A DNA stretch of 64,000 nt from Mobula hypostoma (taxonomy: Eukaryota): the NCBI RefSeq assembly GCF_963921235.1, contig NC_086101.1, forward strand, positions 14,694,001 to 14,758,000, given 5' to 3'. Position 1 is the stretch's first letter. Each line of letters opens with the position of its first letter. Positions 14,520 to 62,870 of this stretch are shown piece after piece. Made by a program: the position numbers and the translations under genes. The notes under the pieces were generated by a model, which did no database searches, was not told the origin of the DNA, and was given only the letters and a program-made list of their open reading frames with translations.

Positions 14520-14562
14520 ATGACGTGGTATGAGTTCGTATGTTTATTGCTGTTGTTCTCTG
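14520..14562 (+). CDS. NCR3-like: Gene A exon: signal peptide MTWYEFVCLLLLFS(G); exon including UTR is 14506-14562
   Basis: Acceptor cttctctttttctatag|G at 14506, ATG at 14520, hydrophobic core, and donor G|gtaag at 14563. It ends in phase 1, matching the phase-1 start of the V exon and giving ...LLFSG-AARANG. Confidence 0.85.
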
Positions 14563-14567
14563 GTAAG

Positions 14568-14985
14568 NNNNNNNNNNNNNNNNNNNNNNNNNNNNNNNNN
14601 NNNNNNNNNNNNNNNNNNNNNNNNNNNNNNNNNNNNNNNNNNNNNNNNNNNNNNNNNNNNNNNNNNNNNNNNNNNNNNNNNNNNNNNNNNNNNNNNNNNN
14701 NNNNNNNNNNNNNNNNNNNNNNNNNNNNNNNNNNNNNNNNNNNNNNNNNNNNNNNNNNNNNNNNNNNNNNNNNNNNNNNNNNNNNNNNNNNNNNNNNNNN
14801 NNNNNNNNNNNNNNNNNNNNNNNNNNNNNNNNNNNNNNNNNNNNNNNNNNNNNNNNNNNNNNNNNNNNNNNNNNNNNNNNNNNNNNNNNNNNNNNNNNNN
14901 NNNNNNNNNNNNNNNNNNNNNNNNNNNNNNNNNNNNNNNNNNNNNNNNNNNNNNNNNNNNNNNNNNNNNNNNNNNNNNNNNNNNN
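14568..14985. other. Assembly gap (N run) starting 5 nt after the leader donor
   Basis: Seen directly. Confidence 0.99.
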
Positions 14986-16739
14986 AGAGAATGAGGAGAA
15001 TGAGAGAGGGGGATAGAAGAATATTGGGAGCATTAAGGTGTTAGTGTTCTCCTCAAGATTATTTTGACAATCACTTAGATTATCACTAATCTAAGGCCTA
15101 ATTGCTCATGCTCACATATTATTCGTTAGTGAAACAATTCAGTCCTTTTTTGAGGGAAGAGCAAGTTCAAAGTAAAATTTATTATCAGAGAACATACAGT
15201 ATATATCACTATATACTAATCTGAGATTCATTGTCTTGCAGGCAGGACAAGGAAAGCAAAGTTTTAGTGCTTTAATGTTCCAAACGGTACAGAGAGGGGG
15301 TAAAAGAGTCGGTGGAGCCGCATTATTAAATGCGCATTACTAAACATCTGCAATTAGAGAGAACATCTTGGAAGGGCATCCAGTGAGGCGACATGGGCAA
15401 AATTTAGGATGGGGTCACGGTGGCACAGCTGTTGTGCAGTTAATTAGGACACCCGAGAATGAAAACGCAATGACATAACAAAAAGAATCAGCCGATTCGT
15501 TCCATCGTGGCAATTAGATCGTATTTGGAAGAAGCGCGTATTTGGCATTTTGCAATGTTAGCGGCTCTCCCCAGCACAGAGGCTTTGCTTCAGTACCACC
15601 TCTGTGCACTGAATCTGTAAGTTCTCTTAATAGCTAAACATGCATCAATGTCTTCTATAAATATGTTCAGTAAGTGAAGCTCCTTGATCTCCTTGGCGAG
15701 AGAATTTCAGAGATTTACCAGCCCAGGGGTGATGATATTTCTTCTCATTTCTCCCCCGAACGAGTAGTAATCTTTTTTAAGACCGTAAAACTTCATTCTT
15801 TCTTTTTCAATATTTTTATTAATTACTTGCATTCTAAACGTCTGAGCAGGGAATATTAATCTGCCATTTAGCTTGTTAAACGACGCATTATCTTTGTGTG
15901 CATCATTTAGATCACCGGTCATTCGTTCAAACAGTAGAGAAAATAACTCCATTCTGTTTAATCTGTCCTCATTCTGCTATGAACCAAGTCATCACTGTGA
16001 TATAACCATTAGACATGGGCGCAGAATTAATTCATTTGGCCTTTTGAATTCTCTCTGCCTTTTCATCATGTCTGATCCATTTTTTTCTCCAACCCATTCT
16101 CCTGCCTTCTCCCAATAACCGTTCACATCCTATCTAATCAAGAACTTATTAACCTCCACCTTCAGTGCACCCAGTGACCCAGCCTTCACGGCCGCCTATG
16201 GCAACGAATTCCACAGGTTCAGCACACTGTGGTTAAAGAAATTCCACCTCATCTCTGTTCTAAATGGACGTCCCTCCATAGTATAATCAGGTCATGACTG
16301 ACCTGAATGTATGGATGGATCGGTGGATTTTCAGCTTTGCATTTCCCTGACAGAAGGTTCAATTACGTAAGCATCAATTATATAAAAGTTCTGGGATAAA
16401 TTTGGTGACTGAACAAAATATTACAGAGAAGGTTATTTATATTGTAAATACACATCTCTCACTTGCAGCGTACAGATTAAAGAAAAATCGCCTTCCATGT
16501 TTGATTCAATGAAAACGTAACGAATCAATTTTCTGATGCTCAGTGACGAGGGAAAGTTTCCAAGGTCCGGCGATGAAAAATGAGATTTGTGATTATTATT
16601 GATAATGGGCGCTGTTGTCAACAGCAACAGGCAATGGCAAATGACATTTGGGGAAGCAAACCATAGCAGAACGCACGCAATATCTGGGAGGCCTCTGCTG
16701 AGTATTAGTGAGCTGAGGGACCTCAGGTTGTAAGTCTGT

Positions 16740-17295
16740 AGAATACTCAAAGTGACAGCAGCAGTGGATAAAGTGGATATTCGAATGTCTGCCTTCATTG
16801 CCGTGTCACTATTACTAATAATTGGCACGTTAGTTTACAACTTCTTAAAACATTAGGTAGACCTCATCTCGGTTATCGTCAGCGGATTTAGCCCCTACAT
16901 TATAGGAAGAATGTTATTGAGCTGACAGGATGCAGTTGCAGCTGATTAAATTAGAAAGTGAAGATTTGTAGATGGCGACAATCTTTATTCCATGACCGGT
17001 GTGTTGAGAAACAATGACATAATTTTACTGTGAGAGATGGGAAATTCGAAAACCTATAGGGATTCCTTTCAGACAGGTGGTGGTTTAAAACTGGGAGGTA
17101 CTGTCTGACGAAGTGGTGGATTGGGATGTACTGTCTGACGAGGTGGTGGAGACAGGTACTGTCGCGATATTTATAAAGGCATCGAATACTTGAATCGCCA
17201 CAGCAGAGAAGTCTATGGACAAGATGTGGGTAAATGAGATCAGCGTAGTTCTGTACAACTCGTGGGTTCGATATGTCGGGCCGAAAGGAAGGTAT
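16740..17295 (+). mobile_element. Very old CR1 3' fossil abutting the gene A V-exon acceptor
   Basis: Degenerate atgtctgccttcatt..., cccctacattataggaag and gtcgggccgaaagg resemble CR1 RT-end and 3'UTR sequence. An orthologous copy lies upstream of the gene B V exon. Confidence 0.6.
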
Positions 17296-17323
17296 GAGAC
17301 TTCGAGATTATTTCCGGTTACAG

Positions 17324-17665
17324 GAGCTGCCAGAGCTAACGGAATAAGCCACCAATGGCCGGAGCGGATCACGGTTACTGAAGGGGGCACGGCGCAGCTG
17401 AATTGTGCTTACATCAGTAATATAAACGTTACAAAGAAGTGGGTCGGATCCCTTACCTGGTACAAAGACGAGGAAAACGGTACCGTTTGCAACAAGTGCA
17501 GTGGGTTTCATGGTCGCGTAACGACTAACAGTTCACAAGGCTTTCTTAACCAAACTTTACAAATCGTCAACGTCAGAATGAACGATACAGGAAAGTATTA
17601 CTGCAAAGTACAAATTTTCGACAAGGGAAGTTATCTTGGCAAAGGGACAGAGGTTCAAGTCACAA
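17324..17665 (+). CDS. NCR3-like: Gene A exon: VJ-type IgSF V domain, NKp30/NCR3-like
   Basis: ttacag|GA ... ACA A|gtaagt, 342 nt, phase 1-1. Has the B-strand Cys (AQLNC), C-strand Trp (GSLTWYKDE), DTGKYYC and a germline-joined G strand (LGKGTEVQV). Motifs parallel human NKp30 as I recall it (IGSVTWFRDE, FRGRL, SSRFL, GNGTRLVV). Five N-glycan sequons. Confidence 0.93.
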
Positions 17666-17889
17666 GTAAGTTCGTATTATTTTGCATTTATATTCGATGT
17701 TTGATGCGCATTTCTCAACTTCTGCAATAAAGTGTACCTCGATACAAATTTAGACACAGAAATTCGGGATGTCGTTGACATATTGATGGTGAAGTACATG
17801 TTGACAAAATAATGAAAAATCAATTAAAATTGCAATTGCCATAATCAAATGAACATTTACAGGAGAGTTAATCCAATCTGTGCCTAACT

Positions 17890-20800
17890 CCATAAGACAT
17901 GGAAGCAAAAAGAGGCTATTTGGCTCATCGAGAACGCTCCGCCATTCAAATGTACAACATGGCCTTTCACTTGCCATTTTCTGCCCGTTCCCCGAATTCA
18001 TCTAAGTCCTTCTGCAGCCTACGTGTTTTCTCAGCATTACTTTCCCCTCCACCAGTCATCCGCAAACTTGGTAACAAAGCCAACTATTCTATCATTTTAG
18101 TCATTAATTTGCAGCATGAAGAGATGCGTTCCGTGCAAAATACCATAGTCACTGGCAGCCAACCGGAAAAGGATTATTTTATTCTCTTTCGCTGCGTCTT
18201 TCCAATCAGCCGATGCACTAACCATGCCAGTAACTTTCCTATAAAACTAAAGGCTCTTAACTTGATAAGCAGCTTCATGTATGGCACCTTGTCAAAGGCC
18301 TTCTGAAAGTCCAAATATACAACATCCACTGCATCCCTTTATCTATCCTAGGTGTAATCTTCTCAAAGAATTTCAACAGGTTCGTCAGGCAAGATTTTAC
18401 CTTAAGAAAACCATGCTGTCATATCTTGTCCTGTGTCACCAAATATTCCATAATGTCATCCTTACAAGACAAAATGTTATGGTGTTATGGGAAAGATACT
18501 GACATGAACAGTGGGATGGCTGACAGGCTGGAGGCAGCGAGTGGCGCCTTCTCTGCTTGGCTGCCGGTGACTAGTGGTTCTCCTCAGAGTGTAGTACTGG
18601 GACCGCTGCTTTTCACATTGTTTGTCTATTTTTTACGTAATGGAATTGTTGGCTTTGTGGCAAAGTTTGCGGATGATAGAAATATAGGTGGCGGGGTTGG
18701 GGGGGGGCGGGGTAGGTAGTGCCGAGGAAGCAAGGCGATTGCAGCTGAACTTACACACTTTGGAAGAATGGGAAAAAAACTCGCAAATAGAATACAGTGT
18801 TGGGAGATATATGATAATCCATTTTGGTAAAAGGAACAATGGTGCGGACTATTATCGAAATGGTGAAAAAGTTCAAACAGCAGAGGTGCAGAGGGACTTA
18901 GGAGTCCTCGTGCAAGACTCCCAAAACATTAATTTACAGGCCGAGTCTGTGGTAAAGATGAGAAATACAAAATTGGTATTTATTTCAAAGGAACAGAACA
19001 TAAGAGCAAGGCGGTAATGTTGGGCCTTTATAAGGCACTAATTCTGGGCACCATATCGCAGAAAGGTTGTTTTGTCATTGAAGAGAGTTCAGAGGAGGTC
19101 GTGAGGATTATTCCTGGAATGAAGGGGTTAACATATGAGGAGCGATTGGCAGCTTTGGGCCTGTACTCACTGCAATTTAGAAGAATACTATGGTATCCTA
19201 TTGAAGCCTTCCGAGTAGAACTTACAACACAATACAGGCCCTTCGGCCCACAAAACTGTGCCCAACATGTCCTTACCCTAGAACTACCAAGGCTTAACCC
19301 ATAGCCCTCAATTTTTCTAAACTCCATGTACTTATCCAGGAGTCTCTTAAAAGACTCTATTGTTTCCGGCTCCACCACCGTCACCAGCAGCCCATTCAAA
19401 GCACCCACCCCTCTCTGCGTAAAAAACTTACCCCTGCCATCTCTGTATCTGCTTCCAAGCACCTTAAAACTGTGCCCTCTCGTACTAGCCCTTTCGGCCC
19501 TAGGAAAAAGCCTCTGATTAACCACACGATCAATGCCTCTCATTATCCTGTACACCTCGATCAGGTCACCTCTCATTCTCCATCGCTCCAAGGAGAAAAG
19601 GCAGAGTTCACTCAACCTGTTTTCATAAGGCATGCTCCCCAAACCAGACAACATCCTTGTAAATCTCTTATGCACCCTTTCTATGGTTTCCACGCCCTTC
19701 CTGAATTGAGCACAGTACTCCAAGTGGGATCTGACCAGGGTCCTATATAGCTGCAACATTACCTCTCGGCTCTTAATCTCAACCCCACAGTTGATGAAAG
19801 CCAATGCACCATATGCCTTCTTAACTACAGAGTCAACCTGCGTAGCAGTTTTGAGTGTCTTATAGACTCAGACCCCAAGACCCTTCTGATCCTCCACACT
19901 GCCAAGAGTCTTACTATTAATGCTGTATTCTGCCCTGATATTTGACCCACCAAAATGAACCGCCTCACACGTATCTGGGTTGAACTCCATCTGTCACTTC
20001 TCAACCTAGTTTTGCATCCTATGAATGTCCCACTGTAACCTCCGACAGCCCTCCACACTATCCACAACACCCTCAACTTTGTGGCATCAGCAAATTTACT
20101 AACCCATCCCTCCACTTCCTTATCCAGGTCGTTTATAAAAATCACAAAGAGTAGGGGCCCCAGAACAAATCCTTGAGGCACACCACTGCTCGCCGACCTC
20201 CATGCAGAATATGACCCATCTACAACCAATCTTTGCCTTTTGTAGGCAAGCCAGTTCTGGATCCACAAAGCAATGTCCCCTTCGATCCCATGCCTCCATA
20301 TACACTACATCTACAGCTCTAGCTTTATCAACAGCCTCATAATTGAAGGGCGACCCTTTAGAACAGAGATAAGGAGGAATTTCTTTCAGCCAGAGAGTAG
20401 TAAAGCTGTGGAATGCTCTGCCACAGACAGTGGTTGAGGCCAAGTCTGTGCATTTATCCAAGGCGAAAGTTGATCGTTTCCTGGATGGTCAGGGAATAAA
20501 AGGAAGGCAGGTATATGTGGTGAATGGGATCCGGGATCAGCTATGAAAGAATAGTGGATGAGACCCAATCGGCTGAATGACCTAATTCTGATCCTATGTC
20601 TTCGGGTCTTCTAGTCTAATGGTCTTAACAATTGACTCTAACGTCTTCCTAACCGCTGAGGTCAGTTTAACTGGTCTGGACCATAAGAAGTTCATAAAGC
20701 TCTGCCTTAAATGCACCTAACGATTTGGCCTCCACAGCTGCCTCTGGTAATAAGTTGCACAAATATACCACGCTATGGCTAACGAAATTTCTCCGCATCT

Positions 20801-25769: not shown

Positions 25770-26600
25770 GTATATTGGCTGGCTGTATCACAGTCTGATA
25801 TGAAAACACCAATGCCCTTCAAAGCCCTTCAAAATCCTACAATAATTTTTGCATACGGCCCAGTCCATCACAGATAAAGCCCTCCCCACTATTAAGCACA
25901 TCTACACGAAGCTTTGTCGCAGAAAACCAGCATCCACCATCAAGGACCCCCGCTAGCTAGGTTATGCTCTCTTCTCCCTGCTGCCATCGGGAATGAGGGA
26001 CGTGAGCCTCAGGACTCACAACACCATGTTTTGCAACCCCTCATCCTTCCGGTTCTTGAACCAAAGTGGATATCTTCATTCAGCTTTACTTGCCCCATCA
26101 TTGAAAACTTCTCACAACCTATGTACTCACTTCTGGGGACTCTTTATCTTATGTTCTCGATATTTATTGCTAGTTTATTATTATTTTAATTGTTGTTATT
26201 ATTATTATTATTATTTCTTCCTTTCTTTTTGCATTTGCACAATTTGTTGTCTTTTTCACACTGGTTGAAAGCCAATTTGGTGGGGTCTATTGTTAATTCT
26301 ATTATAGTTGTTATTCATCATCTATTTATTAAATATGCCCACAATAAAGTGAATCACATGATTATATACGGCTACACTTTAAATTACTCTACAACACGTT
26401 CTCTATATTATTGATTTACTTATTTATTATTATTAGTCTTTTTTGTACTTGTACAGTTTGTCTTCTGTTGCACTTCGGTTGTTTGACAGTCTTTATGTGT
26501 TGCTATTCATTTATTATATTGTATGACTTTGTTCTACTGCAAATGCCAGCAAGAAAATGAAACTCTGCGTAAAATATGGTGACATGTACATACTTTGATA
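25770..26600 (+). mobile_element. Rex1/Babar-like 3' fragment with AT-rich tail
   Basis: ggctgtatcacagtctg..cagtccatcaca..gccctccccact resembles the 3' end of the element at 4985-5900. Confidence 0.55.
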
Positions 26601-27196
26601 ATAAGTTTACATTGAACTTTGATATTACAGCCGCCATTCCTCAGCCTTTTCCTTCTGGAGAAAACAATCTCGTTCGTCCCATCCTCTATCACTACGAAAG
26701 TGCTGCTGTCCAATCAACAATGTGGCAGAAGTTCTTCACCAGTTAGTGGTGATAACCTTTGATTACAAAGTTCTTAATGAACCATCCGTACAGTTTGTCT
26801 CACTACAGAACGCTGCCCGTTCTACCTTGAAGTTTCAGCATGTACTAGTTTTATTTTTCCATTTCAGACAAAGATATCTGTATATATGAATGCTCTCTTA
26901 CCTCGCCCTACCTCCACCTCCGTGTTTGCTTTTAGAAATGAATCCCACATGCAAGATACTCTTGTGGTTTTATCTGTTCAACATTTTCAATCTATAATTT
27001 GTGGAAGAGGTTTACACCCACCCAAATTATAACGAAAACTATCAGGCAGAAAAATATAGACATAGTCAAATGTTACCTCCAGTCTACTTATTGATCATGT
27101 TGGAGCAACGCAGAATAGTCAACGCTGCCATTTAGGATTTTCGACTAAACCTCAGGTCAAAACTATCAATCGATGTAAGAACGGTAAACGAGAAGG

Positions 27197-27423: not shown

Positions 27424-27457
27424 TCCGGCTAACCGATATAACTCTATTCATCATCAG

Positions 27458-27586
27458 TGGTTGCTGAATTGTTTCCGAACGAAAGGAAAATCGTTTTGTA
27501 TGTGTCTCCACTCCTGGTTTCTGTGCTCCTCGCCCTGGCGCTGATCATCATCATCATTTACAGGAAACGTTGTGCCCGATCGACAG
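27458..27586 (+). CDS. NCR3-like: Gene A exon: short stalk plus uncharged transmembrane helix, (M)VAELFPNERKIVLYVSPLLVSVLLALALIIIIIYRKRCARST
   Basis: Branch point ctaac at 27429, acceptor catcag|TG, donor G|gtaatt, 129 nt, phase 1-1. About 24 hydrophobic residues followed by RKR stop-transfer residues. Confidence 0.88.
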
Positions 27587-31643: not shown

Positions 31644-32510
31644 GTACGTGGGGGAATAATATTAATATCATCGAACACCAGATGTAAAGTTCTCATTGCT
31701 AAATGTCCGTCAGTTTGGTCAATAACAGAAGAACGCCCGTATTTTATGCAAAAGTTTATTCAAGAAAATGAAATGTATTATACGAATTCTGTATATTGCA
31801 CGAATCTGAAGCTGAAAAAACACGGATTTTGTTTTATAAAATATTAGCACACTTTTCGCCTATTTGTTTGCCCCTAAAAAATGACTATAGATTTTGAGAG
31901 GGTTCTTAAAGGGAGGTAAGAGGAGTATTGGTTCTGATCGTGGAGGAAGAGAAAGAAATACAGCAGGTAGAAAATGTGTAACCCCCCCCCCCCCACACAC
32001 ACACACACACTAATTGTCTTAATGTCAAATTTAATTAATCTTAGGATTAGCAATTATCGAATTCGAGAGTCGGTTTCAATATTTTATTTGTTAATGCGAA
32101 TACTTCGTGCAAAGCGTCATACTGACACTGAAAAATAGTTTAATTTTATAAAGGTTCAGATACGTTAACGACGAAGTATATTTTGCTCTCATAGTTAGGG
32201 AACTAGGATTTAATTTTTTCTCATTTTATTTGTGCATTCGGTTAAAAAAATCATTTGTTTGAAATGTTTTATAGATAAAGAATCCACAACCCAAGCTGTA
32301 CCTAAGGTACGTATCTTATTAAAATTAAAGTTTTTGATCACGTTTTTCCTCTGTGATTACTTGCCATTGTATGTGAGAATTATTGAGGTATAAACAGAGA
32401 TAGTTGTTGTTTTAGAATAATCCAAGCTCCTTGGCTCCAGACACATCAAATTAAGACACTGTACCTGTTAACTTGGTGTTTGATAAAAAGCAATATATTT
32501 ACTGTTCTAG

Positions 32511-32569
32511 ATCATGATGGATTGTGTCCGAAGCCACTATACATAGTTCTTCAGAGGCCCAGCAAGCAG
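32511..32569 (+). CDS. Gene A candidate cytoplasmic mini-exon 2, (N/D)HDGLCPKPLYIVLQRPSKQ
   Basis: tttactgttctag|AT ... CAG|gttata, 59 nt, phase 1 to 0. This is the phase change needed to join the TM exon to the phase-0 ITIM exon. Confidence 0.55.
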
Positions 32570-43726: not shown

Positions 43727-43969
43727 AAAGAGAAATCTGTAGTCTATGCTGAAATAAATATGAGGAAAGCGCCACGGACTCGACCATTGGACTACGTTGC
43801 ATGCGAGTCAGGCCGGACTGGACGGAGTTCCCAAGCGGGAAAAAGGGAAGATCCGATTCTCTACGCCGAGGTGAGAGCTGCATCGCCTAGAAATGATTGG
43901 GCGTCAACGAAGCCCACGAAGTCTCCCAGAAGAGAGGAGCAGATCGTGTATGCGGCCGTGAATGTGTAG
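43727..43969 (+). CDS. NCR3-like: Gene A terminal coding exon with three ITIMs (VVYAEI, ILYAEV, IVYAAV)
   Basis: Acceptor gtctgttccattccag|AAA, phase 0, 80 codons then TAG. The three [IV]xYxx[IV] motifs are at 43739-56, 43856-73 and 43943-60. Non-repetitive sequence. Confidence 0.85.
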   Translation, partial: KEKSVVYAEINMRKAPRTRPLDYVACESGRTGRSSQAGKREDPILYAEVRAASPRNDWASTKPTKSPRREEQIVYAAVNV

Positions 43970-44967
43970 CGTATGTGAGGCAGCCTTCTTTACTTTGACA
44001 GCAATAGATCCTGCAGGCCCAGCAAGCCAGCGGAGTCCAATTATACCCACGTCACCAATTAACCTATTAAACCGCAGGAATGTTGAAGGAAACCGGAGCA
44101 ACCGGAGGAAACCCATATCGCCACAGGCACGTCGTACAATCTCCTTACTGATTACTGCGGGAATCACATCCGTGTCGCTGGTGCTGCAATGGCATTAAGC
44201 TAGCCGCTACGCTACCATGCCGCCCATCAGTTTCTTGAACCGGCAGGGATATGAACATTGGGGAAGGATTCCTGTAGTTGGGCGAATTCACTGCGCCCTA
44301 AGCGCCGATTACCGTATTGTATCTCTAAGTAAAATATAACAAGTAAAATTTATCGTATTTGCCATTCTAAACGGCGTATCTGATATCCACGACCCCTGGT
44401 TCCATACTTTCCAGCTCTCAGTTGCATTGCTGTATAAAACTACTTTTAAGCTGTTAGCATTTTATCTCCAGTCTCATATCATAGTCATGAGTTACAACAA
44501 TATCCGAGATGATTCTCGTCGCAATTATGATTCTCAATCCGGGAAACAAGATTATATTCAAGGTTGTAGGTGCCTGTATTTATTCTTTGAAGTTTGCCTG
44601 GTCATCTGGCGGTTTTGTAAGGCTATTGCAGGTAGCGTTGTCAAGGGTGCTGCTTCCTAATGTTGGAGTTATGAATCAGCTAGAATTTTATAGGTTTCGC
44701 TTATATTTCCCTGGTGTCGTTTTTCAAGTTCAAATTCAAATTTATTGTTATCCAATTTCGCACATGTATACTTCTACGCAAAACAAAGTTCCTCTGGGAC
44801 CACAGTGAAAAACACAGTACAGATATCACATACAGCGCATAAATGGTATTAGCACAACAATGTTAAGAGATTAAAAGTATCCTGTAGATGCACAAGTTGC
44901 GTCGGAGCGCTGCACTCCTGCTTTACAATTCCAAACCCACTTTCGGAGATTGTACCAGCATGAGATT

Positions 44968-47877: not shown

Positions 47878-50800
47878 TTGTCCATATAGGTACCAATGAC
47901 ATAGGTAGGAAAAGGGATGAGGTCCTGAAAGGAGAATATAGGGAGCTAGGAAGGGAGTTGAGAAAAAGGACCGCAAAGGTAGTAATCTCGGGATTACTGC
48001 CTGTGCCACGCGACAGTGAGAGTAGGAATGCGATGAGGTGGAGGATAAATGCGTGGCTGAGGGATTGGAGCAGGGGGCAGGGATTCAAGTTTTTGGATAA
48101 TTGGGACCTCTTTTGGCGCAGGCGTGACCTGTACAAAAAGGACGGGTTACACTTGAATCCTAGGGGGACTAATATCCTGGCAGGGAGATTAGCGGGGGCT
48201 ACTGAGGTGACTTTAAACTAGAATGGTTGGGGGGTGGGAATCAAATTAAAGAAGCTAGGCGTGAGGAGGTTAGTTCACAACAGAGGGAAGGGAACCAGTG
48301 CAGAGAGACAGAGGGGTGTAAAGTGAGCGTAGAAGCAAAAAGTACAAAGGAGAAAAGTAAAAGTGGCAGGCCGACAAATCCAGGGCAAGCATTAAAAAGG
48401 GCCACTTTTCAACATAATTGTACAAGGGCTAAGAGAGTTGTAAAAGAGCGCCTGAAGGCTTTATGTGCCAATGCAAGGAGCATTCGTAATAAGGTGGATG
48501 AATTGAAAGTGCAGATTGTTATTAATGATTATGATATAGTTGGGATCACAGAGACATGGCTCCAGGGTGACCAGGGATGGGAGCTCAACGTTCAGGGATA
48601 TTCAATATTCAGGAGGGATAGACATGAAGGAAGGGGAGGTGGGGTGGCGTTGCTGGTTAAAAAAGAGATTAACGCAATAGAAAGGAAGGACATAAGCCGG
48701 GAAGATGTGGAATCGATATGGGTAGAGCTCCGTAACACTAAGGGGCAGAAGACGCTGGTGGGAGTTGTGTACAGGCCACCTAACAGTAGTAGTGAGGTCG
48801 GAGATGGTATTAAACAGGAAATTAGAAATGTGTGCAATAAAGGAACAGCAGTTATAATGGGTGACTTCAATCTACATGTAGACTGGGTGAACCAAATTGA
48901 TAAAGGTGCTGAGGAAGAGGATTTCTTGGAATGTATGCAGGATGGTTTTTTGAACCAACATGTCGAGGAACCAACTAGAGAGCAGGATATTCTGGACTGG
49001 GTTTTGAGCAATGAGGAAGGGTTAATTAGCGATCTTGTCGTGAGAGGCCCCTTGGGTAAGAGTGACCATAATATGGTGGAATTCTTCATTAACATGGAGA
49101 GTGAGATAGTTAATTCAGAAACAAAGGTTCTGAACTTAAAGAGGGGTAACTTTGAAGGTATGAGACGTGAATTAGCTAAGATAGACTGGCAAATGACACT
49201 TCAAGGATTGACGGTGGATATGCAATGGCAAGCATTTAAAGGTTGCATGGATGAACTACAACAATTGTTCATCCCAGTTTGGCAAAAGAATAAATCAAGG
49301 AAGGTAGTGCACCCGTGGCTGACAAGAGAAATTTGGGATCGTATCAATTCCAAAGAAGTAGCATACAAATTAGCCAGAGAAAGTGGCTCACCGGAGGACT
49401 GGGAGAAATTCAGAGTTCAGCAGAGGAGGACAAAGGGCTTAATTAGGAAGGGGAAAAAAGATTATGAGAGAAAACTGGCAATGAACATAAAAACTGACTG
49501 TAAAAGCTTTTATAGATATGTAAAAAGGAAAAGACTGGTAAAGACAAATGTAGGTCCCCTGCAGACAGAAACAGGTGAATTGATTATGGGGAGCAAGGAC
49601 ATGGCAGACCAATTGAATAATTACTTTGGTTCTGTCTTCACTAAGGAGGACATAAATAATCTTCCAGAAATAGTAAGGGACAGAGGGTCGAGTGAGATGG
49701 AGGAACTGAGTGAAATACATGTTAGTAGGGAAGTGGTGTTAGGTAAATTGAAGGGATTGAAGGCAGATAAATCCCCAGGGCCAGATGGTCTGCATCCTAG
49801 AGTGCTTAAGGAAGTAGCCCAAGAAATAGTGGATGCATTAGTGATAATTTTTCAAAACTCGTTAGATTCTGGACTAGTTCCTGAGGATTGGAGGGTGGCT
49901 AATGTAACCCCACTTTTTAAAAAAGGAGGGAGAGAGAAACCGGGGAATTATAGGCCGGTTAGCCTAACGTCGGTGGTGGGGAAACTGCTGGAGTCAGTTA
50001 TCAAGGATGTGATAACAGCACATTTGGAAAGCGGTGAAATGATCGGACAAAGTCAGCATGGATTTGTGAAAGGAAAATCATGTCTGACGAATCTCATAGA
50101 ATTTTTTGAGGATGTAACTAGTAGAGTGGATAGGGGAGAACCAGTGGATGTGGTATATTTGGATTTTCAAAAGGCTTTTGACAAGGTCCCACACAGGAGA
50201 TTAGTGTGCAAACTTAAAGCACACGGTATTGGGGGTAAGGTATTGGTGTGGGTGGAGAATTGGTTAGCAGACAGGAAGCAAAGAGTGGGAATAAACGGGA
50301 CCTTTTCAGAATGGCAGGCGGTGACTAGTGGGGTACCGCAAGGCTCAGTGCTGGGACCCCAGTTGTTTACAATATATATTAATGACTTGGATGAGGGAAT
50401 TAAATGCAGCATCTCCAAGTTTGCGGATGACACGAAGCTGGGTGGCAGTGTTAGCAGTGAGGAGGATGCTAAGAGGATGCAGGGTGACTTGGATAGGTTG
50501 GGTGAGTGGGCAAACTCATGGCAGATGCATTTTAATGTGGATAAATGTGAAGTTATCCACTTTGGTGGCAAAAATAGGAAAACAGATTATTATCTGAATG
50601 GTCGCCGATTAGGAAAAGGGGAGGTGCAACGAGACCTGGGTGTCATTATACACCAGTCATTGAAAGTGGGCATGCAGGTACAGCAGGCGGTGAAAAAGGC
50701 GAACGGTATGCTGGCATTTATAGCGAGAGGATTCGAGTACAGGAGCAGGGAGGTACTACTGCAGTTGTACAAGGCCTTGGTGAGACCACACCTGGAGTAT

Positions 50801-51353
50801 TGTGTGCAGTTTTGGGTCCCCTAATCTGAGGAAAGACATCTTTGCCATAGAGGGAGTACAAAGAAGGTTCACCAGATTGATTCCTGGGATGGCAGGTCTT
50901 TCATATGATGAAAGACTGGATGAACTGGGCTTGTACTCGTTGGAATTTAGAAGATTGAGGGGGGATCTGATTGAAACGTATAAGATCCTAAAGGGATTGG
51001 ACAGACTAGATGCGGGAAGATTGTTCCCGATGTTGGGGAGGTCCAGAACGAGGGGTCACAGTTTGAGGATAGAGGGGAAGCCTTTTAGGACCGAGATTAG
51101 GAAAAACATCTTCACACAGAGAGTGGTGAATCTGTGGAATTCTCTGCCACAGCAAACTGTTGAGGCCAGTTCATTGGCTATGCTTAAGAGGGAGTTAGGT
51201 ATGGCCCTTGTGGCTACAGGGGTCAGGGGGTATGGAGGGAAGGCTGGGTTCTGAGTTGGATGATCAACCATGATCATAATAAATGGCGGTGCAGGCTCGA
51301 AGGGCAGAATGGCCTACTCCTGCACCTATTTTCTATGTTTCTGTGTTTCTATG
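47878..51353 (+). mobile_element. Near-intact young CR1, 5'-truncated in ORF1, inserted into the host CR1
   Basis: ORF1 end (VHIGTND...LN*), then an 865-codon ORF2 frame and a ctatgttt tail. A gtcc microhomology lies at the 5' junction. Confidence 0.95.
48206..51254 (+). pseudogene. CR1 ORF2: APE endonuclease plus reverse transcriptase, with a single +1 insertion at about 50815
   Basis: NARS, ITETW, GDFN, SDH, QHGF, PQGSVLGP and FADD motifs. TTT TGG GTC CCC TAA occurs where WSPN is expected, and the frame resumes at 50802-51254. Confidence 0.9.
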
Positions 51354-53760: not shown

Positions 53761-54763
53761 TGTGTTGAGCGGTATGGATATCATCCAACACTGTATTCAA
53801 GCTCGCCGCAAAACGTATACTGAATTTACTGGAGTGTCGAAGGTAAATTAAATCTTGTATGTCACCCACAAAAACTAAAATGCTGTGAACGAAATATGAA
53901 ATATAGTGTCTCTTTTGATGTTGTAACATTGATGGTGTGATTAATGTGCACTTTCAATGACTGATGGTCCTTTATCTAATTCAAGTAATAAATGCGGACA
54001 GTTGCCAATCGGAGTTCGTTTCACTAGCAGGTAAGAGATTCTGCAGCCGCTGGAAATCCAGCGTAACACACGGAATGCTGGAGGAAGTCAGCAGATCAGG
54101 CAGCATTTATGGAAAGGAATAAAGGGGCTTCCCGATGAAGAAAATCGGGCCAAAACAACGTCATTATATTCTTCACCATTGATGCTGCTTGACCTGATAA
54201 GTTCCTCCAGCATCTTGCGGGCGCAAGTTATGTATAGAAGTTATTATTCTGGAAAAACTTTTACTTCAATCATGAATAAACAGTATTTCAGTTAATACCA
54301 TTACTAACAACTTAAAAGCCCGGTGATATTAACGGAAATATTAAATATGATTATTTTTAAGCTCCGCCCTATAAACTACAGTTCTAATATTTCAAAGATC
54401 ACAGTAATAGCCCACAATATGTTATGTAATTTAAAGAAAAAAGCCTAACTCCTACATGGGCGATAGTGGGCGTGTCTGGTATGTGGCCAAAACTCAGTTC
54501 TATGCCAACAGAAACTCCAAAGACCTCATCCCAAGAGAGGAAGGATCTTCGAAGACAGGCTAAACCTGGGGACAATTTGAAAGAATTATCAGAACGGATG
54601 ACTCTGGTGAGCTGCTTTCAGAGGCCCATGCGTCAGTTGGAGTGATGTAGAAAATCATAAATGCTCCAAAGACCCAACAGGTCAGGCAGCATCAGTGGAT
54701 GGCGAGTTCGCATTTCCAGACCTATAGTAAATAAATACAGGTGTTGCAAATGTCGATAACAAC

Positions 54764-54923
54764 NNNNNNNNNNNNNNNNNNNNNNNNNNNNNNNNNNNNN
54801 NNNNNNNNNNNNNNNNNNNNNNNNNNNNNNNNNNNNNNNNNNNNNNNNNNNNNNNNNNNNNNNNNNNNNNNNNNNNNNNNNNNNNNNNNNNNNNNNNNNN
54901 NNNNNNNNNNNNNNNNNNNNNNN
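54764..54923. other. Assembly gap (N run)
   Basis: Seen directly. Confidence 0.99.
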
Positions 54924-55922
54924 GGAAGATGCTCTGAACCCTTCCGGAGACCAAAGATTGACCTTTTCTCAGAACATTGATTCTGTGAGGTGTTTCCAGC
55001 TTGTTATGCTTTTATTTACCAGTTTAAGCCTTTCAGCCGTATGTGGAAACAGCCTGAGACGAAAGTAATAATAACCAGTTCATCCAAAGTCACTTTCAAG
55101 GCTACTGAAACTTAGATAATATAACTACAATCTGATGTGACCAGGAATCAGCAAACTCTGAACACGGTGTTGATTTTGTATTATTTCACCATTTAACGAA
55201 TTGCTCTATCATCAACAGTCATAAGGAATCGATTTTGTAAGCATATGAGACTACATATTGATGTCTTGCTAATACAGCTTCAGCAAAGTATTTGTTCTTC
55301 TTGGTTTCCAATTGTTGGATGTGTTTATTCAAACACGCAGGAAAGTTTCAGTATTATTAGCTGAGAAAATAAAATACATAAATTAATTCAGCAACAAATG
55401 GAAGCAGCATGGAACAAAATTAATTACAATTACAATTTTTCGCCTGCCTAGCATCTCCCTCTTGCGCCCCTTTTCATTGCCATCCTTCCATCGCCCACTC
55501 AACTGCCCTACCATACTCCGTCACCCGCTGGTGTCCTCCTTATTCCCATTCTTCCATGGTCCACCGACCTCCTCTGAGAGATTCCGGCTCCTTCGGACTT
55601 CACCGCTTCCACCTTTCATCTTCCACCTCTTACTTCACGCCCCCACTCCCCCCACCGACTTACCATCCCTCTCACCTGGCTTCACCTATCAACTTCTAGC
55701 TTGTACACGTCCCCCTTACATATCTTATTATTCTGATGCTTCCCTCTTCCTTCCAGTCCTAATCAAAAGTCTCTTGGCTCAAAACGTTGACACTTTATTC
55801 CATTCCATATTTGCTGCCTACCAAATATGGTGCCAACGCTGTCACGTGATAATTATGAGGAAAAATTCTAGCTGGCCCGCGTATGTTTTCATTTTAGGTA
55901 CAGCTGAGAAATTTAACTGATA

Positions 55923-57534
55923 CAGTGGCATGCAAAAGTTTGGGCCCCTGGTCAAATTTTCTGTTACTGTGAATAGTTAAGTGAGTAGAAGATGAACTGA
56001 TCTCCAAAAGTCAAAAAGTAAAAGATGAAACATTCTTTTCAACATTTTAAGCATGATTAGTGTATTATTTTTGTTTTGTACAATTTTAGAGTGAAAAAAG
56101 GAAAGGCGCACCATGCAAAGGTTTGGGCACTCCAAGAGATTTGAGCTCTCAGATAACTTTTACCAAGGTCTCAGACCTTAATTAGCTTGTTAGGGCTTTG
56201 GCTTGTTCACATCAATCGTTAGGAAAGGCCAGGTGATGCAAATTTCAAAGCTTTATAAATACCCTGACTCCTCTAACCTTGTCCCAAAAATCAGCAGCCA
56301 TGGGCTCCTCTAAACAGCTGCCTAGAACTCTGAAAATTAAAATAAATGATGCCCACAAAGCAGGAGAAGGCTATAAGAAGACAGCAAAGCGTTTTCAGGT
56401 AGCCGTTTCCTCAATTCGTAATGTAATTAAGAAATGGCAGTTAACAGGAACGGTGGAAGTCAAGTTGAGGTCTGGAAGACCAAGAAAACTTTCCGAGAGA
56501 ACTGCTCGTAGGATTGCTAGAAAGTTAAATTAAAACCCCCGTTTGACTGCAAAAGACCTTCCGGAAAATTTAGCAGACTCTGGAGTGGTGGCGCACTGTT
56601 CTACTGTGCAGCGACACCTGCACAAATATGACCTTCATGGAAGAGTTATCAGAAGAAAACCTTTCCTGCGTCGTTACCACAAAATTCATCGTCAGAAGTT
56701 TGCAAAGGAACATCTAAACATGCCTGATGCATTTTGGAGACAAGTCCTGTGGACTAATGAAGTTGAAATAGAACTTTTTGGCCGCAATGAGCAGAGGTAT
56801 GTTTGGAGAGAAAAGGTGCATAATTTCATGAAAAGAACACCTCTCCAACTGTTAAACACGGGGGTGGATTTATCATGCTTTGGGCTTGTGTTGCAGCCAG
56901 TGGCACGGGTAACATTTCACTCGTAGAGGGAAGAATGAATTCAATTAAATACCAGCAAATTCTGGAAGCAAACATCACACCATCTGTAAAAAAATGAAAA
57001 GGGGATGGTTTCTACAGCACGATAATGATCCTAAACACACCTCGAAATCCATAATGGACTACCCCAAGAGGCGCAAGCTGAAGGTTTTGCCATGGTCCTT
57101 ACAGTCCCCCGACCTAAACATAATCGAGAATCTGTGGATAGACCTCAAAAGAGCAGTGCATGCAAGACGGCTGAAGAATCTTACAGAACTAGAAGCTTTT
57201 TGCAAGGAAGAATGGGCGAAAGTCCCCCAAATAAGAATTGAAAGTCTCTTAGCTGGCTACAGGAAGTGTTTACAAGCTGCGATACTTGCCAAAGGGGGTG
57301 TTCCTAAGTACAGACCTTGCAGGTTGCCCAAACTTTTCTTCGGACCCTTTTCCTTTCTTGTTATTTTGAAACTGTAAAAGATGGAAATAAAAAAATTAGT
57401 CTTGATTAAAATATTAAAGAAATGTGTCATCTTTAACTTTATCCCTTTTGGAAATCAGGTCATCTTTTACTCGCTTAGTTATTCGCAGTAGCAGAAATTT
57501 TGACTAGGGGTGCCCAAACTTTTGCATGCCACTG
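55923..57534 (+). mobile_element. Full-length Tc1/mariner DNA transposon (IR/DR type) with TA TSD and a decayed transposase at about 56300-57313
   Basis: TA|CAGTGGCATGCAAAAGTTTGGGC ... GCCCAAACTTTTGCATGCCACTG|TA, with about 210-bp imperfect TIRs that carry an inner copy of AAAGTTTGGGC. GRPRK, VLWTNE, QHDNDPKH and SPDLNIIENLW motifs; stop at 56531 and frameshifts. Confidence 0.95.
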
Positions 57535-59474
57535 TATGTATGCAATTATGAGATGGCCAAAAAAGATAGACTGGAAGCCTGCATTTCCTAAGCAACTGAA
57601 TAAGTATCTGCCAGAATTGAATAGCGTCATGGGCACGAAAAGTACAGTGAAGTTGCTAATATTATTAAGCCAAATAGTCAGGGGTGTTGGGCGGGTGTGC
57701 TGATAAAGAATTCGCTGACAGAAAGGATAGTAGAATCAAATACCACCATTCTATTTATGAAGCAGTTAATGGGCACTTGCAAAGGAGTAACCTCTCAGTA
57801 TTCAGACTGGATTGTAATATTCATCTCAACATCACCTTTCCGCCCAGCATTTTTATAACGAGTGAAATTATATTAACCTGCACCGACTGCTTTATTAGAC
57901 TCTATGAGCTGGAATCAGAACTCCACATAAGGAATAAAGATAGGCAGGTATGGCTCGTGATTGAACATAGTGACAATGAATGAGAAATAATCTATCAGAT
58001 AATGTATTAATGAATTTCGGATGTTGCCTTAAGTTTTAGTCTCTTATCCTATTACAAATGTGAGTAATATTCTATTTTTCACAATGAAGTTGCATTTTAT
58101 TTCTGCAATTTTGTTATTCTCCGCCACACTTATAGAATGCCTATATGTTTTTTTCATGAAAATTGAGCAATGATGACATTTGATTTCATAACAGGACAAT
58201 TTAAGCCAGAAAACCAGACGTTTCCAACATCCCCGATTCAGGTTTAAATACAATCAAAGCATTTCCCTCGCTATCAAATATAATCCTGTGTTGTAAGCAC
58301 TGGCGCTGCCTGCCCTATTGAATGTAGTCAGCATTTCTTTTTCTTTATTATTTCATTTCCAGCATCTGTGTCATTTTTATTCAAAATAGCTGATCAAAAA
58401 GCCGTGCTAAATTTCCATGCTTTTGTAATTCCAGATGGAGCAAGGTAATGCATAGTGAACTCCATCTTCTCATTTCTGTGAATACTAATATCTAAACAAG
58501 TTGAATATTTCCCTCAATCCTCCTGAAAACCCCAAGAGCATAAGATATTAACGTATCAATAGGTCATATGGCCCTTCGTACTTATTCCATCATAATTGAT
58601 CGGTTACCACTTTCATAAACAGCATTTGATCGTGAAAATAACTATAATATGATCAGAGATTACATTAGATTGGAACTTAGGAGAATATTTCTCTTTAAAG
58701 CGAAATTTGTTAAGTAAGCAGACATTCTCAATACGTTTATATTTTGAATGCCCATTTAAATTTTAGTGCTACATACTCATTCGTGCGAAATGTGTAGATT
58801 CAATTAGCGTTTTAGGGGTAAGGCTAATCAATGGCTTTTTCTGTTCGTTTTCCGATTATCTGTCACGGTTTTTGTTTGTCACCGTCCGTCGAAACATTTC
58901 TTCCACAAGAAAAGGAAGAGTTTGATTTGAGTATCTTGGCTGAACAACTACCAATAGCCATAATGGATCAGACAGGCAAAGCAGGATTTTCAAATTTATT
59001 ATCTGTTCAATTTTTCAGTAAAATGTCTTAAATAATTATTACCAAGACATAAACACCATTAACTGCAAAGCACCCCTAAGATATGTTTCTCGAGAATTGT
59101 TTGTGACACACGAAACTGCGGAGCAGAGTAGATCTTAGCATCTTTAGCTAGAACCTGTGAATCTCTGGAGCTTATTGGCACAGACAGTGGTGGCGGCCCA
59201 TTCATTGAGTTTATTTAAAACAGAGGTTGATAGGATCTTGATTAGTAAGAGCGGCAAAGGTTACGGGGAGAAGACAGGAGAATGGTGTTGAGAGGGATAA
59301 TAAATCAGCCATGATCGAATGGCGGAGCAGACTCCATAGGCCGATTGGCCTAATTGTACTGCTATGTCTTTTGGTTTTATTGTATTAATTGACCAGAATA
59401 GACTTCTGTATTGAACTATTAAACGTTGCGCACAACTATTACTTTTAAATCCTGCGCCAAATGCAGACTTCTAT

Positions 59475-59662
59475 TCATGTCGGTAATTTTTTAAACTGTG
59501 TTTCCATGAATACTTGCCTGTTGGCTAGGTTTGTTGCTATGAGAGCTCTAGATGTCCCCCAGGTGCAGATGCCGAAAACTGTTACAATGTTGATCAAAGC
59601 AAACACTGCAAGTTTCAGTCCTATTTCAGTCAGCTGCCAACGCAAGCTCCTTGGGTTCCGAG
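59475..59662 (-). CDS. NCR3-like: Gene B exon: stalk, TM with Lys and short tail, (P)RNPRSLRWQLTEIGLKLAVFALINIVTVFGICTWGTSRALIATNLANRQVFMETQFKKLPT*
   Basis: Strong minus-strand acceptor gatttatttttattctcaac-ag|CT at 59663/59662, phase 1 and in frame with the V exon. The hydrophobic helix contains K (59613-15) and N. Stop TGA at 59477-59475 and AATAAA on minus at 59381-59376. Not in the ORF track because it has no upstream start codon. Confidence 0.85.
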
Positions 59663-62528
59663 CTGTTGAGAATAAAAATAAATCACATTCACCAACAAAT
59701 CACGTCCAAGTCCTATCGATTTCATCTCGGTTTTGTGCATGGAAATGTTGCTTGTTTTGGTTTAAATAGACAGGTACTATCATCGCTAACTATTATGGAG
59801 GCCTAGCAGTGCAGCTAGAGGAGATGCTGTGTCACAGTTCCAGCAGCGGGTGTTCAATCCTCGTTTTGGTGACGTCAGTGCGGAGTTCGCACGTTCTTTT
59901 TGTTACTGCCTGGCTTTGCTCCGGGTGCTTCATTTTCCACCCTGACCTTGACAAATGACATCTATTAATCACTCTTTCTCTGTAGTGGAGTTGATGGAAA
60001 TGTGAAGAAAGTAGGTTACAGAGAGAAGCTGGTATGGAAATTGATTGCTCTTTTAAAAGGCTTAGACTTGCATCAAATGTTTTCGGTCTCTGTGTAAAAG
60101 TATCATTTTGCCTTGTTTTCCTTTATAATTTGCTAATCCCATGCAAAGTGGAATAAGTTATTTCTCCAGTTTGATACGATTTGACTTCTACAATTGTATT
60201 ATAATTTTATTCGTGAATATCGAGTCCTTTTGATATTTAACTGAATAAGCATGGCGACTGAATGTTTACTTTTTAAAGTTTTCAGTCAATTTACCATTCA
60301 AGTGTTCAACACAATGGAGGCAACTTGTACGCAGTGAAATAAAGACAATCGTCATGAAGGCCTTCGCTGATTTGGTTATACCGTTATGTGGTCACGTGCC
60401 ATCTAATATCGTGAGATATCCACATTCCGCCATTGATTTGCTCATCTCTTATCAAACTATCTTTCATTTTTCGATTTATCTGTCTCTTTCTACTCTGTGA
60501 GGATTAACCGTTAATAATATTCCTGATCTACAGATTTCTCAGCGAACGGTCAATCGGCAGCTGCATCCCTGAATTCTGTTAAATTGGTTGATTGAATTTG
60601 TAGGCGACCTGTCTTTCACAGAAAGGAGTTATGGCTGGTGGAGAGTGCCATGAATTGTGGTAGGATGCATCTATACCAAATATAGAAACGTTTAGAGTCC
60701 TAATACACGGCCTCAACCCACACCATCCACTATGTCTACACAAATGCTGCCTATCCCTGTAACTTCCTCCAGCAGTTTGTTTTTGTTAAAGTATACCGTT
60801 CCCAAATCACCACCTTAACGAATTGGACCTATTGAGATATTGATATACACTTGCGCACGGGGTGGATGTAACGCTTTATTGTAACGTTTAATTTACAATT
60901 TTGTTCCATTTGGGCAGCAGCTATTCATTCCGGATCATATATGGGGTTTGACTTTCCGCAGTAGAATGGGTTTGAGAGGGATAATCAATTAGCTACGATG
61001 CAATGGTGAAGGATTAATTCTCTTACTATGCCTTATTGACTTACAGTTTAAGTCTGTTTTTCGCGCAGCGGGGTTGAAAACAACAATAAAGCAAATAAAT
61101 CTCTTACTAGCCCTTCCTTCAGTTAGTCCTGACGAAGAGTCTCGGCCCGAAACGTCGACTGTACCTCTTCCTAGAGATGCTGCCTGGCCTGCTGCGTTCA
61201 CCAGCAACTTTGATGTGTGTTGCATAAAGCAAAATTAACCTGACATGAAAGTCTTAAATTTTGCACCATGTAGCAATTTATTTCCTTCATATTAAACTGT
61301 CCGAAAGTAAATTGTTCAACTACCGGGGTGAAATTCAACCCACTGGATCTACTTTAATGGCCTTGGAAATCTAGCCCACAAGTAACAATTATCATAATGG
61401 TTTTATGATTCCCTGGCGCCCTTCCTCTTTAGTCAGCATCTTCGCCACCAATTCATTGTCTCACGTTTGTGATTTTGATCAGTTGCTTTCAAATGCTTTC
61501 CAAACAGTGGTTGAGAAGGCATTGTCCTTACAAGTCGGGGCATTGAGCTCAAAAGTCAGTAAGCTGTGTTGTAACTTCACAAAACTCTAGTTAGGCCGCA
61601 TCTGGAGTATCCCAGACAGGTCTGTTTGCCCGATTATGGTAAGGACGTTGAGGCTTTGGAAATGGTGTACGAGAGATATCCCGGAATTCCGGTATGAAGT
61701 CATAGAAAAGTACAGCACAGAAACAGGCCATTCCGCCCGTGTCGACATATTTAATAGGCCTACTCCCATCAAGCTGCGCCAGTCCATTGCCCTCCAGAAC
61801 CCTACCATCCGAACTTCACTTAAACGTTGGAATCGAGCTTATATGCACCACTTGTGCTAGTAACTCGTTCTACACTTTCCTGGTCCTCATGTTTCCCTTA
61901 TATTCCCCTTAAATATTTCACCTTTCACCATGCTTGCAGTTACCCTATTCACCCTGATTACCCTATCTGCGACGCCATTTTCAACTAAATATGGATATTG
62001 TTTGACTTAGACTAGGATATCTGGAACAACGAGAGGCTGGAAAATCTGTGCTGTGTTCTCTGGAGCGATGAAGGCTAAGGCGAGATCTGATACAGATTTA
62101 TAAAAGGCATTGATTGCCAGATGGCCTAATTCTGTTCCTACATCTTATGGTCTTATAGTCATATATTCCAAAGCTCTGACGCTTAAATACGATTTTTTGA
62201 TGAGGGTGGTAAAACACTGAACGTGAAGGTAAGATAATGCAAACTTCTGCCCGTTTCCAAGATAATGCTGAGCAATCCCGGCATTTTCTTCTGTTTGCTT
62301 ATTTGATTTCTTTCTGGTGGTGTGTGACTGATTCTGGGAATTAACTTGATTATGTCGATTGCAATGTTAATTTACCTTTCACTATTTTATCAACATGTAA
62401 TTCACCATCACTATGTCAATGATATTCATAATTTCTTTGTCTAAATTTGCACTGAGGTACACTTTATTGCAGAAGTTGAGAAATACGCATAGAACGTCGA
62501 AGATAAATGCAATATAAGACTAACTTAC

Positions 62529-62870
62529 GTATGACTGTAACTTGTGTCCCTTTTCCAAGATAAACTCCCCTCCCGAGAAGATGTGCTCTGCAGTAATACT
62601 TCCCTGTATCGTTCTTTCTGACGTCGACGAGTTGTACAGATTGGCTTAAAATGCCCATTGAACTGTTGGTCCTTACGCGACCATGAAACCCGCGGCACCA
62701 GTTGCAAACGGTACGGTTTTCCTCGTCTTTGTACCAGGCGATGGCTCCGATCATCTTCCTTGTATCGTTTATTTTACTGATATAACTACAATTCAGCTGC
62801 GCCGTGCCCCCTTCAGTAACCGTGATTTGCTCTGGCGATTGTTTGATTACTCCGTTAGTTCTTGTAGATC
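62529..62870 (-). CDS. NCR3-like: Gene B exon: VJ-type IgSF V domain, paralog of the gene A V exon
   Basis: Minus-strand ttacag|GA ... ATA C|gtaagt, 342 nt, phase 1-1 and open. 74 of 114 aa identical to the gene A V domain by manual alignment. Confidence 0.93.

Follow-up and report, generated by a model that had tools for sequence, protein, structure and literature searches.

To our knowledge, NKp30 (NCR3) is the only natural killer (NK) cell receptor whose orthologs can be traced across the jawed vertebrates, and in mammals it acts as a lone activator. A stretch of 64,000 nucleotides from the ray Mobula hypostoma (NCBI RefSeq assembly GCF_963921235.1, contig NC_086101.1, positions 14,694,001 to 14,758,000 of the forward strand), referred to here as the window, raises the question of whether the same scaffold can also carry a system of paired inhibitory and activating receptors. 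A preliminary description of this DNA had reported two NKp30-like genes, named here gene A (plus strand) and gene B (minus strand), and had read them as such a pair, built by this lineage and possibly recognising B7-H6-like ligands. With a probability of roughly 0.75, we consider the window to be part of a large NKp30-family cluster in which inhibitory-type and activating-type genes converge, with the neighbouring gene LOC134346120 as the partner of gene A, the whole forming a fast-evolving paired-receptor module.

Structure of the two genes

Genes A and B are convergent and lie tail-to-tail. Each has one exon for a V-set domain (V exon) and one transmembrane (TM) exon, and the last coding exon of gene A contains immunoreceptor tyrosine-based inhibitory motifs (ITIMs). 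The coding exons, in window positions and with the evidence for each, are:

14520–14562, plus strand: leader exon of gene A, coding part (MTWYEFVCLLLLFS plus 1 nt); tblastn of XP_062903491 at 100%, exact translation
17324–17665, plus strand: V exon of gene A, VJ-type V-set domain; 342 nt, phase 1/1, AG acceptor, GT donor, Pfam V-set
27458–27586, plus strand: TM exon of gene A, uncharged (VSPLLVSVLLALALIIIII), then YRKRCARST; exact translation, RNA contig
32275–32306, plus strand: exon 4 of gene A, 32 nt, (D)KESTTQAVPK; tblastn at 100%, splice sites, exact translation, RNA depth in the bin 32187–32367
43727–43969, plus strand: last coding exon of gene A with three canonical ITIMs; motif scan, exact translation, stop codon at 43967–43969
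62529–62870, minus strand: V exon of gene B, VJ-type V-set domain; 342 nt, phase 1/1, AG acceptor, GTAAGT-type donor, RNA contigs X1 record 8 and X10 record 16 with 0 mismatches
59518–59662, minus strand: TM exon of gene B with a lysine (codon 59615–59613) in ...WQLTEIGLKLAVFALINIVTVFGICTW; GC donor (cag/gcaagt), spliced RNA contigs
57257–57371, minus strand: tail exon of gene B, coding part (SFKITRKEKGPKKSLGNLQGLYLGTPPLASIAACKHFL and stop codon); tblastn of the M. birostris protein P0001, RNA contig X11 record 19 joining 59518 to 57371

Gene A is the RefSeq locus LOC134346121, because the five corrected exons translate residue for residue to XP_062903491 (P0004, 262 aa) and the form that skips the TM exon gives XP_062903494 exactly. 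The coding sequence (CDS) of XP_062903491, which NCBI labels 'T-cell immunoreceptor with Ig and ITIM domains-like isoform X1', spans 29,450 bp in GCA_963921235.1, which is exactly 14520–43969. The leader, V, TM and ITIM exons had been placed correctly in the preliminary description, and the ITIM exon, for which it had allowed splicing to a different gene, is assigned to gene A by the exact RefSeq match and by orthologous models in five other batoid species. An exon proposed at 32511–32569 (plus strand), together with its junctions, had to be abandoned: it is absent from XP_062903491 and all orthologs, its RNA depth is about 0 to 1, and the true exon 4 is the one at 32275–32306. The V exon of gene A encodes the canonical Cys pair, five N-glycan sequons, an extra CxxC pair and the J-like motif LGKGTEVQV, and the ITIMs are VVYAEI (43739–43756), ILYAEV (43856–43873) and IVYAAV (43943–43960). 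According to the TM and motif scan, the combination of an uncharged TM segment with three ITIMs departs from the basic TM segment and motif-free tail of the NKp30 type, and gene A is classified here as a predicted inhibitory relative of NKp30 and not as an NKp30-type activator.

The V exon of gene B encodes the canonical Cys pair, an extra CxxC and five N-glycan sequons, with the J-like motif LGKGTQVTV in the same exon. Spliced RNA contigs bear out the junction 62529/59662 and the TM lysine, both proposed earlier; the read-through tail of 27 aa that had been proposed with them is replaced, as the transcripts exit at the GC donor 59518/gcaagt and join the exon at 57371. The cytoplasmic part within the window is GTSRALIATNLAN followed by SFKITRKEKGPKKSLGNLQGLYLGTPPLASIAACKHFL and the stop codon, 52 aa in all. 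Its single Tyr lies, in the motif scan, outside any ITIM, immunoreceptor tyrosine-based switch motif (ITSM) or immunoreceptor tyrosine-based activation motif (ITAM), so that gene B combines a basic TM segment with a motif-free tail as NKp30-family receptors do. The ortholog in M. birostris is the 'NCR3-like' protein XP_072113482, with a V domain 96% identical to that of gene B; this ortholog (P0001) has a Tyr-free tail of 25 aa that ends after GPK. In the M. hypostoma tail exon the stop is absent after ...KEKGPK (57335–57340, minus strand) and the frame continues for 27 codons, to 57257, either because the two species differ here or because of the model. No M. hypostoma protein for gene B was among the results of a word search with the V domains, and the gene appears to be unannotated in this species. 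Its leader must lie past the end of the window, because the CDS of the M. birostris ortholog spans 12,917 bp.

Several further observations concern gene A. RefSeq isoform X2 (XP_062903494, P0005, 219 aa) omits the TM exon and joins the V exon straight to exon 4 and the ITIM tail, which makes its product TM-less. The reading frame of gene A ends in AAVNV and a stop codon (43964–43975, plus strand), and the M. birostris, Hypanus and Hemitrygon orthologs continue for three more codons (...AAVNVQRM); the window still reads RM behind the stop. Intron 2 of gene A contains the following relic:

25917–25993, plus strand: relic of a Cys-rich stalk exon (...QHPPSRTPAS-stop-VMLSSPCCH...); tblastn of P0012, 59% over 34 aa, including the stop

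The in-frame TAG disables this exon and the gene A model skips it, while Hypanus and Hemitrygon use the equivalent in some isoforms. Mobula gene A has thus lost a CC-containing stalk of a kind that could make disulfide-linked dimers. An alternative TM exon with Lys for gene A was not found in the window by tblastn with P0002, P0003 and P0006, nor was a further V exon or related TM exon found anywhere in the window.

The probable partner of gene A

Two conserved activating TM types can be distinguished in the batoid relatives of these genes, 'Lys1' (...LTEIGLKLAVFALINIVTVFGICTW) and 'Lys2' (...LLEMGVKLIIFLVINIVTVLF...). Lys1 is the type of gene B and is also present in P0001, P0008 and P0011, and Lys2 is present in P0002, P0003, P0009 and P0010; the motif scan showed no canonical ITIM in the Lys forms. 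A 'TCR-alpha/delta-like' T-cell receptor motif was considered for the TM segments and rejected, as a PDB sequence search with the Lys-TM exons of gene B and P0003 gave no match at E up to 10. By the accession order, LOC134346120 (XP_062903488-90) lies just upstream of the window; it has a Lys2 TM segment and a CDS span of 3,988 bp. In M. hypostoma the accessions of LOC134346120 (Lys2) and gene A (LOC134346121) are consecutive; in M. birostris the accession order is the gene B ortholog, the ITIM gene and the Lys2 gene (XP_072113482-88), and in Pristis it is the ITIM gene and then the Lys2 gene (XP_051899801-04). P0003 carries the same NCBI name as gene A and was considered as one of its splice isoforms, which is ruled out by the accession numbers that assign it to LOC134346120.

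The V domains of the ITIM and Lys2 genes compare as follows:

ITIM versus Lys2, M. hypostoma: V identity 94.7%; rest of the protein unrelated
ITIM versus Lys2, M. birostris: V identity 90.3%; rest of the protein unrelated
ITIM versus Lys2, Pristis: V identity 92.8%; rest of the protein unrelated
Mobula versus Pristis, any type: V identity 54–59%; ITIM tails 48%, Lys2 TM segments and tails 63.5%

In the V-domain tree, the domains cluster with the neighbour of opposite signalling type and not by tail type, and the V domain of gene B clusters with the stingray Lys1 genes and not with that of gene A. The approximately unbiased (AU) test rejects monophyly of V domains linked to ITIM tails (p 2e-4) and likewise of those linked to Lys2 segments (p 1e-73), for clade groups that were named after inspection of the tree. 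Since the ITIM and Lys2 V domains are about 93% identical in Pristis as well, against about 55% between orders, the data point to V exons that have been homogenised within each ITIM/Lys2 pair. As judged from these sequences, the real paired partner of gene A is LOC134346120 and not gene B, which would represent a separate activating lineage conserved in stingrays. The paired-receptor reading of the preliminary description stands in this modified form: inhibitory-type and activating-type genes on an NKp30-like VJ domain do lie tail-to-tail and both are expressed, but gene B is not the tight partner, a place taken by LOC134346120 with its 94.7% V identity.

Homologs of the TM segment and ITIM tail of gene A are present in M. 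birostris, Hypanus sabinus, Hemitrygon akajei, Pristis pectinata and the skate Rhinoraja longicauda, and the orthologous ITIM tails of other batoids are 48–93% identical. Among 1.84 billion representative sequences, tail homologs were found in Hemitrygon, Rhinoraja and Hypanus, and those of Mobula birostris and Pristis came from word searches. The same search of representatives gave only one weak teleost match outside the batoids (26% identity, E 1.5e-4), no shark or frog homolog of the batoid ITIM tail, and no visible match to TIGIT. The putative module extends over skates, stingrays, devil rays and one sawfish. The paired architecture supposed in the preliminary description is therefore retained, but not as the invention of one lineage first seen here, as these groups share it and the relatives are already annotated as 'NCR3-like' by NCBI. 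In Hypanus sabinus, the Lys1 gene (P0011) and a very divergent ITIM-tailed NKp30-like gene (P0019) have consecutive LOC numbers (LOC132394821/LOC132394822), and the Lys1 lineage may own a separate inhibitory neighbour in stingrays.

Relationship of the V domains to NKp30

The V domains of genes A and B share 65.2% protein identity and 82% nucleotide identity, in agreement with the earlier report of two convergent 342-nt V exons of the same phase and about 65% identity; both are open, in phase 1/1 and flanked by AG/GT sites. Pfam V-set PF07686 matches the two domains (113–114 aa, open) with E 1.6e-11 and 5e-10. In both genes the V region and the J-like GxGTxVxV motif are encoded in one 342-nt exon, which is the non-rearranging VJ type of the NKp30 family.

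For both V domains, the highest-ranking PDB entry with a single domain is human NKp30 (phmmer E 5e-9 and 4e-11), in line with the NKp30-like reading of the preliminary description. A profile built from 14 batoid V domains and compared with the PDB scores 52 bits against NKp30 and 27.5 bits against the best antibody domain among the alignments listed, and TIGIT is matched with E of about 7e-5 versus 5e-9 for NKp30. For the AlphaFold model of the gene A V domain (predicted local distance difference test, pLDDT, 86.5), Foldseek ranks 1–4 are all NKp30, with 32% identity and E 1e-10. By sequence and modelled fold, both V domains are closest to human NKp30, where the assignment is a ranking by similarity rather than a test of clades in a rooted tree. 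In NCBI, paralogs and orthologs of gene A carry the name 'NCR3-like' and gene A itself that of 'TIGIT-like', which probably reflects its ITIM tail.

Transcription of genes A and B

No mismatches to the window occur in the RNA runs of organism A, which are therefore considered to be from the same species, and the libraries are RNA, because non-repeat intron bins have a depth of 0 in both stretches examined. Much of the very high RNA depth in these stretches falls on repeats such as LINE (long interspersed nuclear element) ORF2. For gene B, two contigs of organism B, X11 record 19 (772 nt) and X7 record 25 (881 nt), link 62817–62529 to 59657–59518, and X11 record 19 continues into 57371–57290 of the tail exon. 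In organism A, X1 record 2 (200 nt) covers exactly 59518–59662 with spliced flanks and 0 mismatches, and contigs of 253–268 nt cover the V exon, also with 0 mismatches.

For gene A, X1 record 3 (189 nt = 129 + 2x30) matches the TM exon with no mismatch, while both of its flanks lie off the stretch. Its shape looks like a k=31 assembly bubble, as would arise if some transcripts included the TM exon and others skipped it. For the V exon of gene A, 0.60–0.67 of the sampled words are present in the RNA runs. The predicted link from this exon to the ITIM exon rests on the RefSeq model, phase compatibility and conserved orthologous models, themselves automatic predictions. Both genes are transcribed in run X1, and both are expressed as spliced mRNAs.

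Gaps, repeats and gene order

The window contains two assembly gaps:

14568–14985, no strand: gap in intron 1 of gene A, starting 5 nt past the GT donor of the leader exon
54764–54923, no strand: gap between the two 3' ends, in the intergenic spacer

No exon depends on either gap. The independent assembly of M. birostris shows the gene B ortholog and a 269-aa ITIM gene converging with ends 9.9 kb apart; the tail-to-tail order is thus not a scaffolding artefact, since this assembly repeats the convergent layout.

The spacer between genes A and B also contains a LINE ORF2 (865 aa, endonuclease and reverse transcriptase) at 48227–50824 (plus strand), and a reverse transcriptase fragment lies near the start of the window at 880–1410 (minus strand). 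The duplicated unit shared by genes A and B reaches about 190 bp into both introns around the V exon (17128–17848 versus 63055–62346). Nucleotide identity between A and B is 82% in the V exon and 76–82% in the intron flanks, so that the exon is conserved no more than they are. The ratio of nonsynonymous to synonymous substitutions (dN/dS) is 1.13, as one would expect of a domain that binds ligands and evolves under diversifying or relaxed selection. Another inverted block of homology, about 1.1 kb long and 78–82% identical, connects 19231–20300 (plus strand) with 53727–52491 (minus strand); it sits downstream of the V exon of gene A and past the 3' end of gene B, and may be a shared transposon copy or the remnant of a duplicated unit. 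No gene of the major histocompatibility complex (MHC) lies within the window.

Alternative explanations

It comes close to an even chance, in our estimation, that genes A and B are no more than neighbours that diverged within an NCR3-like gene cluster evolving by birth and death, with different ligands and no pairing between them, and that gene A and LOC134346120 form the only functional pair. The 94.7% V identity of that pair speaks for this explanation, as do the grouping of the gene B V domain with the stingray Lys1 genes and the 65% identity between the V domains of A and B, whose CDR3-like (complementarity-determining region 3) stretch is wholly different (KVQIFDKGS in A, RAHLLGRGV in B). 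On the other hand, the convergence of the ITIM gene with the gene B ortholog is kept in M. birostris, A and B are transcribed in the same run X1, and classical paired families also hold members with diverged ectodomains.

The two other alternatives question the genes themselves. That the V domains come from another V-set family (TIGIT/nectin-like, CD22/Siglec-like or antigen-receptor-like) and only superficially resemble NKp30 would agree with the 'TIGIT-like' label of LOC134346121, with the whole-chain E-values, in which multi-domain antibody constructs beat NKp30, and with the ESM Atlas feature search, which ranked CD22-like, nectin and other generic V-set clusters first. The hits of that search were all generic V-set look-alikes, which do not tell one family from another, whereas the per-domain scores against antibody V domains and TIGIT given above, the four top Foldseek ranks and the 'NCR3-like' names of orthologs and paralogs all favour NKp30, which makes an origin from another family unlikely. 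Less probable still is an artefact, either a mis-scaffolding at the gap 54764–54923 that created the tail-to-tail layout or a gene B that is a transcribed pseudogene. Such an artefact might be suspected from the position of the gap between the two 3' ends, from the missing M. hypostoma protein and in-window leader of gene B, and from its tail reading frame, which differs from that of M. birostris; yet the independent M. birostris assembly has the same convergent pair, the annotated ortholog is 96% identical in the V domain, and each of the three exons of gene B inside the window has an open frame and good splice sites, with spliced contigs at 0 mismatches.

Some points weigh against the paired-receptor module as we propose it. 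LOC134346120 lies outside the window, and its adjacency to gene A is read from the accession order; the clades of the AU test were chosen with the tree in view. An identity of 65% between A and B is low for receptors with a common ligand. The tail of gene B is longer in M. hypostoma than in M. birostris and contains a Tyr, and its leader is outside the window, with none found in 62871–64000. No single RNA contig was seen that spans gene A from the V exon to the ITIM exon. Phosphatase recruitment, adaptor pairing, cell type, ligand and opposite signalling are all inferred.

Proposed mechanism

According to its motifs, gene A would respond to ligand binding with phosphorylation of the ITIM tyrosines, which would recruit SHP-type phosphatases and damp the cell. 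Of the three ITIMs that would serve this recruitment, two are deeply conserved and one is specific to the lineage. Surface expression and signalling of the Lys-TM gene products would require an adaptor with an acidic TM segment, of the FcRgamma/CD3zeta/DAP12 type. As in other paired families, the Lys2 gene next to gene A would continue to match its binding site, and gene B would form a further activating lineage that has diverged more. Gene conversion or repeated replacement of the V exon could keep the V exons alike within a species, while the signalling exons remain orthologous across batoids.

Comparison with known receptor systems

Human NKp30 (PDB 3NOI/3PV6/6YJP) has, like both ray genes, a single VJ-type V-set domain in one exon with a J-like GxGT motif. 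Gene B further resembles it in that the outer part of the TM segment contains a basic residue close to its end (Lys here, Arg in NKp30) and in the absence of a signalling motif of its own. Mammals possess one activating gene with a TM arginine, whereas the rays have a multigene cluster with a TM lysine, one member of which combines an uncharged TM segment with three ITIMs. The ray V domains also differ from NKp30 in their extra CxxC pair and five N-glycan sequons. TIGIT resembles gene A in its layout, a single V-set domain followed by a TM helix and by inhibitory tyrosine motifs in the cytoplasmic tail, but the similarity of its V domain is far weaker than that of NKp30 and, in the search of representatives, a match of the gene A tail to TIGIT was not seen.

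The MHC-linked XMIV/NKp30-like genes of Xenopus and the NCR3 family of the nurse shark are likewise multi-copy, non-rearranging genes of the NKp30 VJ type in cold-blooded vertebrates. ITIM-bearing XMIV genes were reportedly described in Xenopus by Ohta in 2006, Flajnik is said to have covered NKp30 homologs in 2012, and the nurse-shark NCR3 family was reportedly treated by Kinlein in 2021. The nurse-shark NCR3 genes are MHC-linked.

Classical pairs (KIR2DL/2DS, LILRB/LILRA, SIRPalpha/beta, CD300, PIR, chicken CHIR, teleost NITR and CEACAM1/3) are adjacent genes with similar ectodomains, as are the ray genes. As in these pairs, one ray gene has an uncharged TM segment and ITIMs and the other a basic TM segment and a short tail, and the ectodomain is fast-evolving (dN/dS about 1.1). 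Unlike them, the ray scaffold is a single NKp30-type VJ domain and not a C2/I-set or CD300-type domain, and the homology is limited to the Ig fold. In the CEACAM pairs of Xenopus, inhibitory and activating partners also stay similar within species (PMC5112662).

Significance for the NKp30 family

Paired Ig-like receptors and multi-copy NKp30-family genes are already known, gene A is already annotated automatically, and no paper describing the batoid module was found in the literature searched. The most interesting addition is the homogenisation of V domains within pairs across batoid orders, and we know of no earlier description of it. In it, nature provides a clean case of opposing receptors whose V exons are homogenised. 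For the annotation, gene A should be named as an NCR3-like inhibitory receptor and not as 'TIGIT-like', and gene B can be added with its GC-AG intron and corrected 3' exon.

A more far-reaching interpretation, which we consider rather doubtful at present, would date the module of the ITIM gene and its Lys-TM neighbour back to the crown batoids, with orthologous signalling exons and V exons that were repeatedly homogenised together, and would imply that the NKp30 family was ancestrally paired, with only the activating member kept in mammals. If this were true, the activating counterpart would have been held matched to the inhibitory receptor for well over 100 million years. The proposed module itself provides a concrete, testable case in which the logic of paired receptors, a brake and a matched trigger, would have been realised on the ancient NKp30 scaffold early in vertebrate history.

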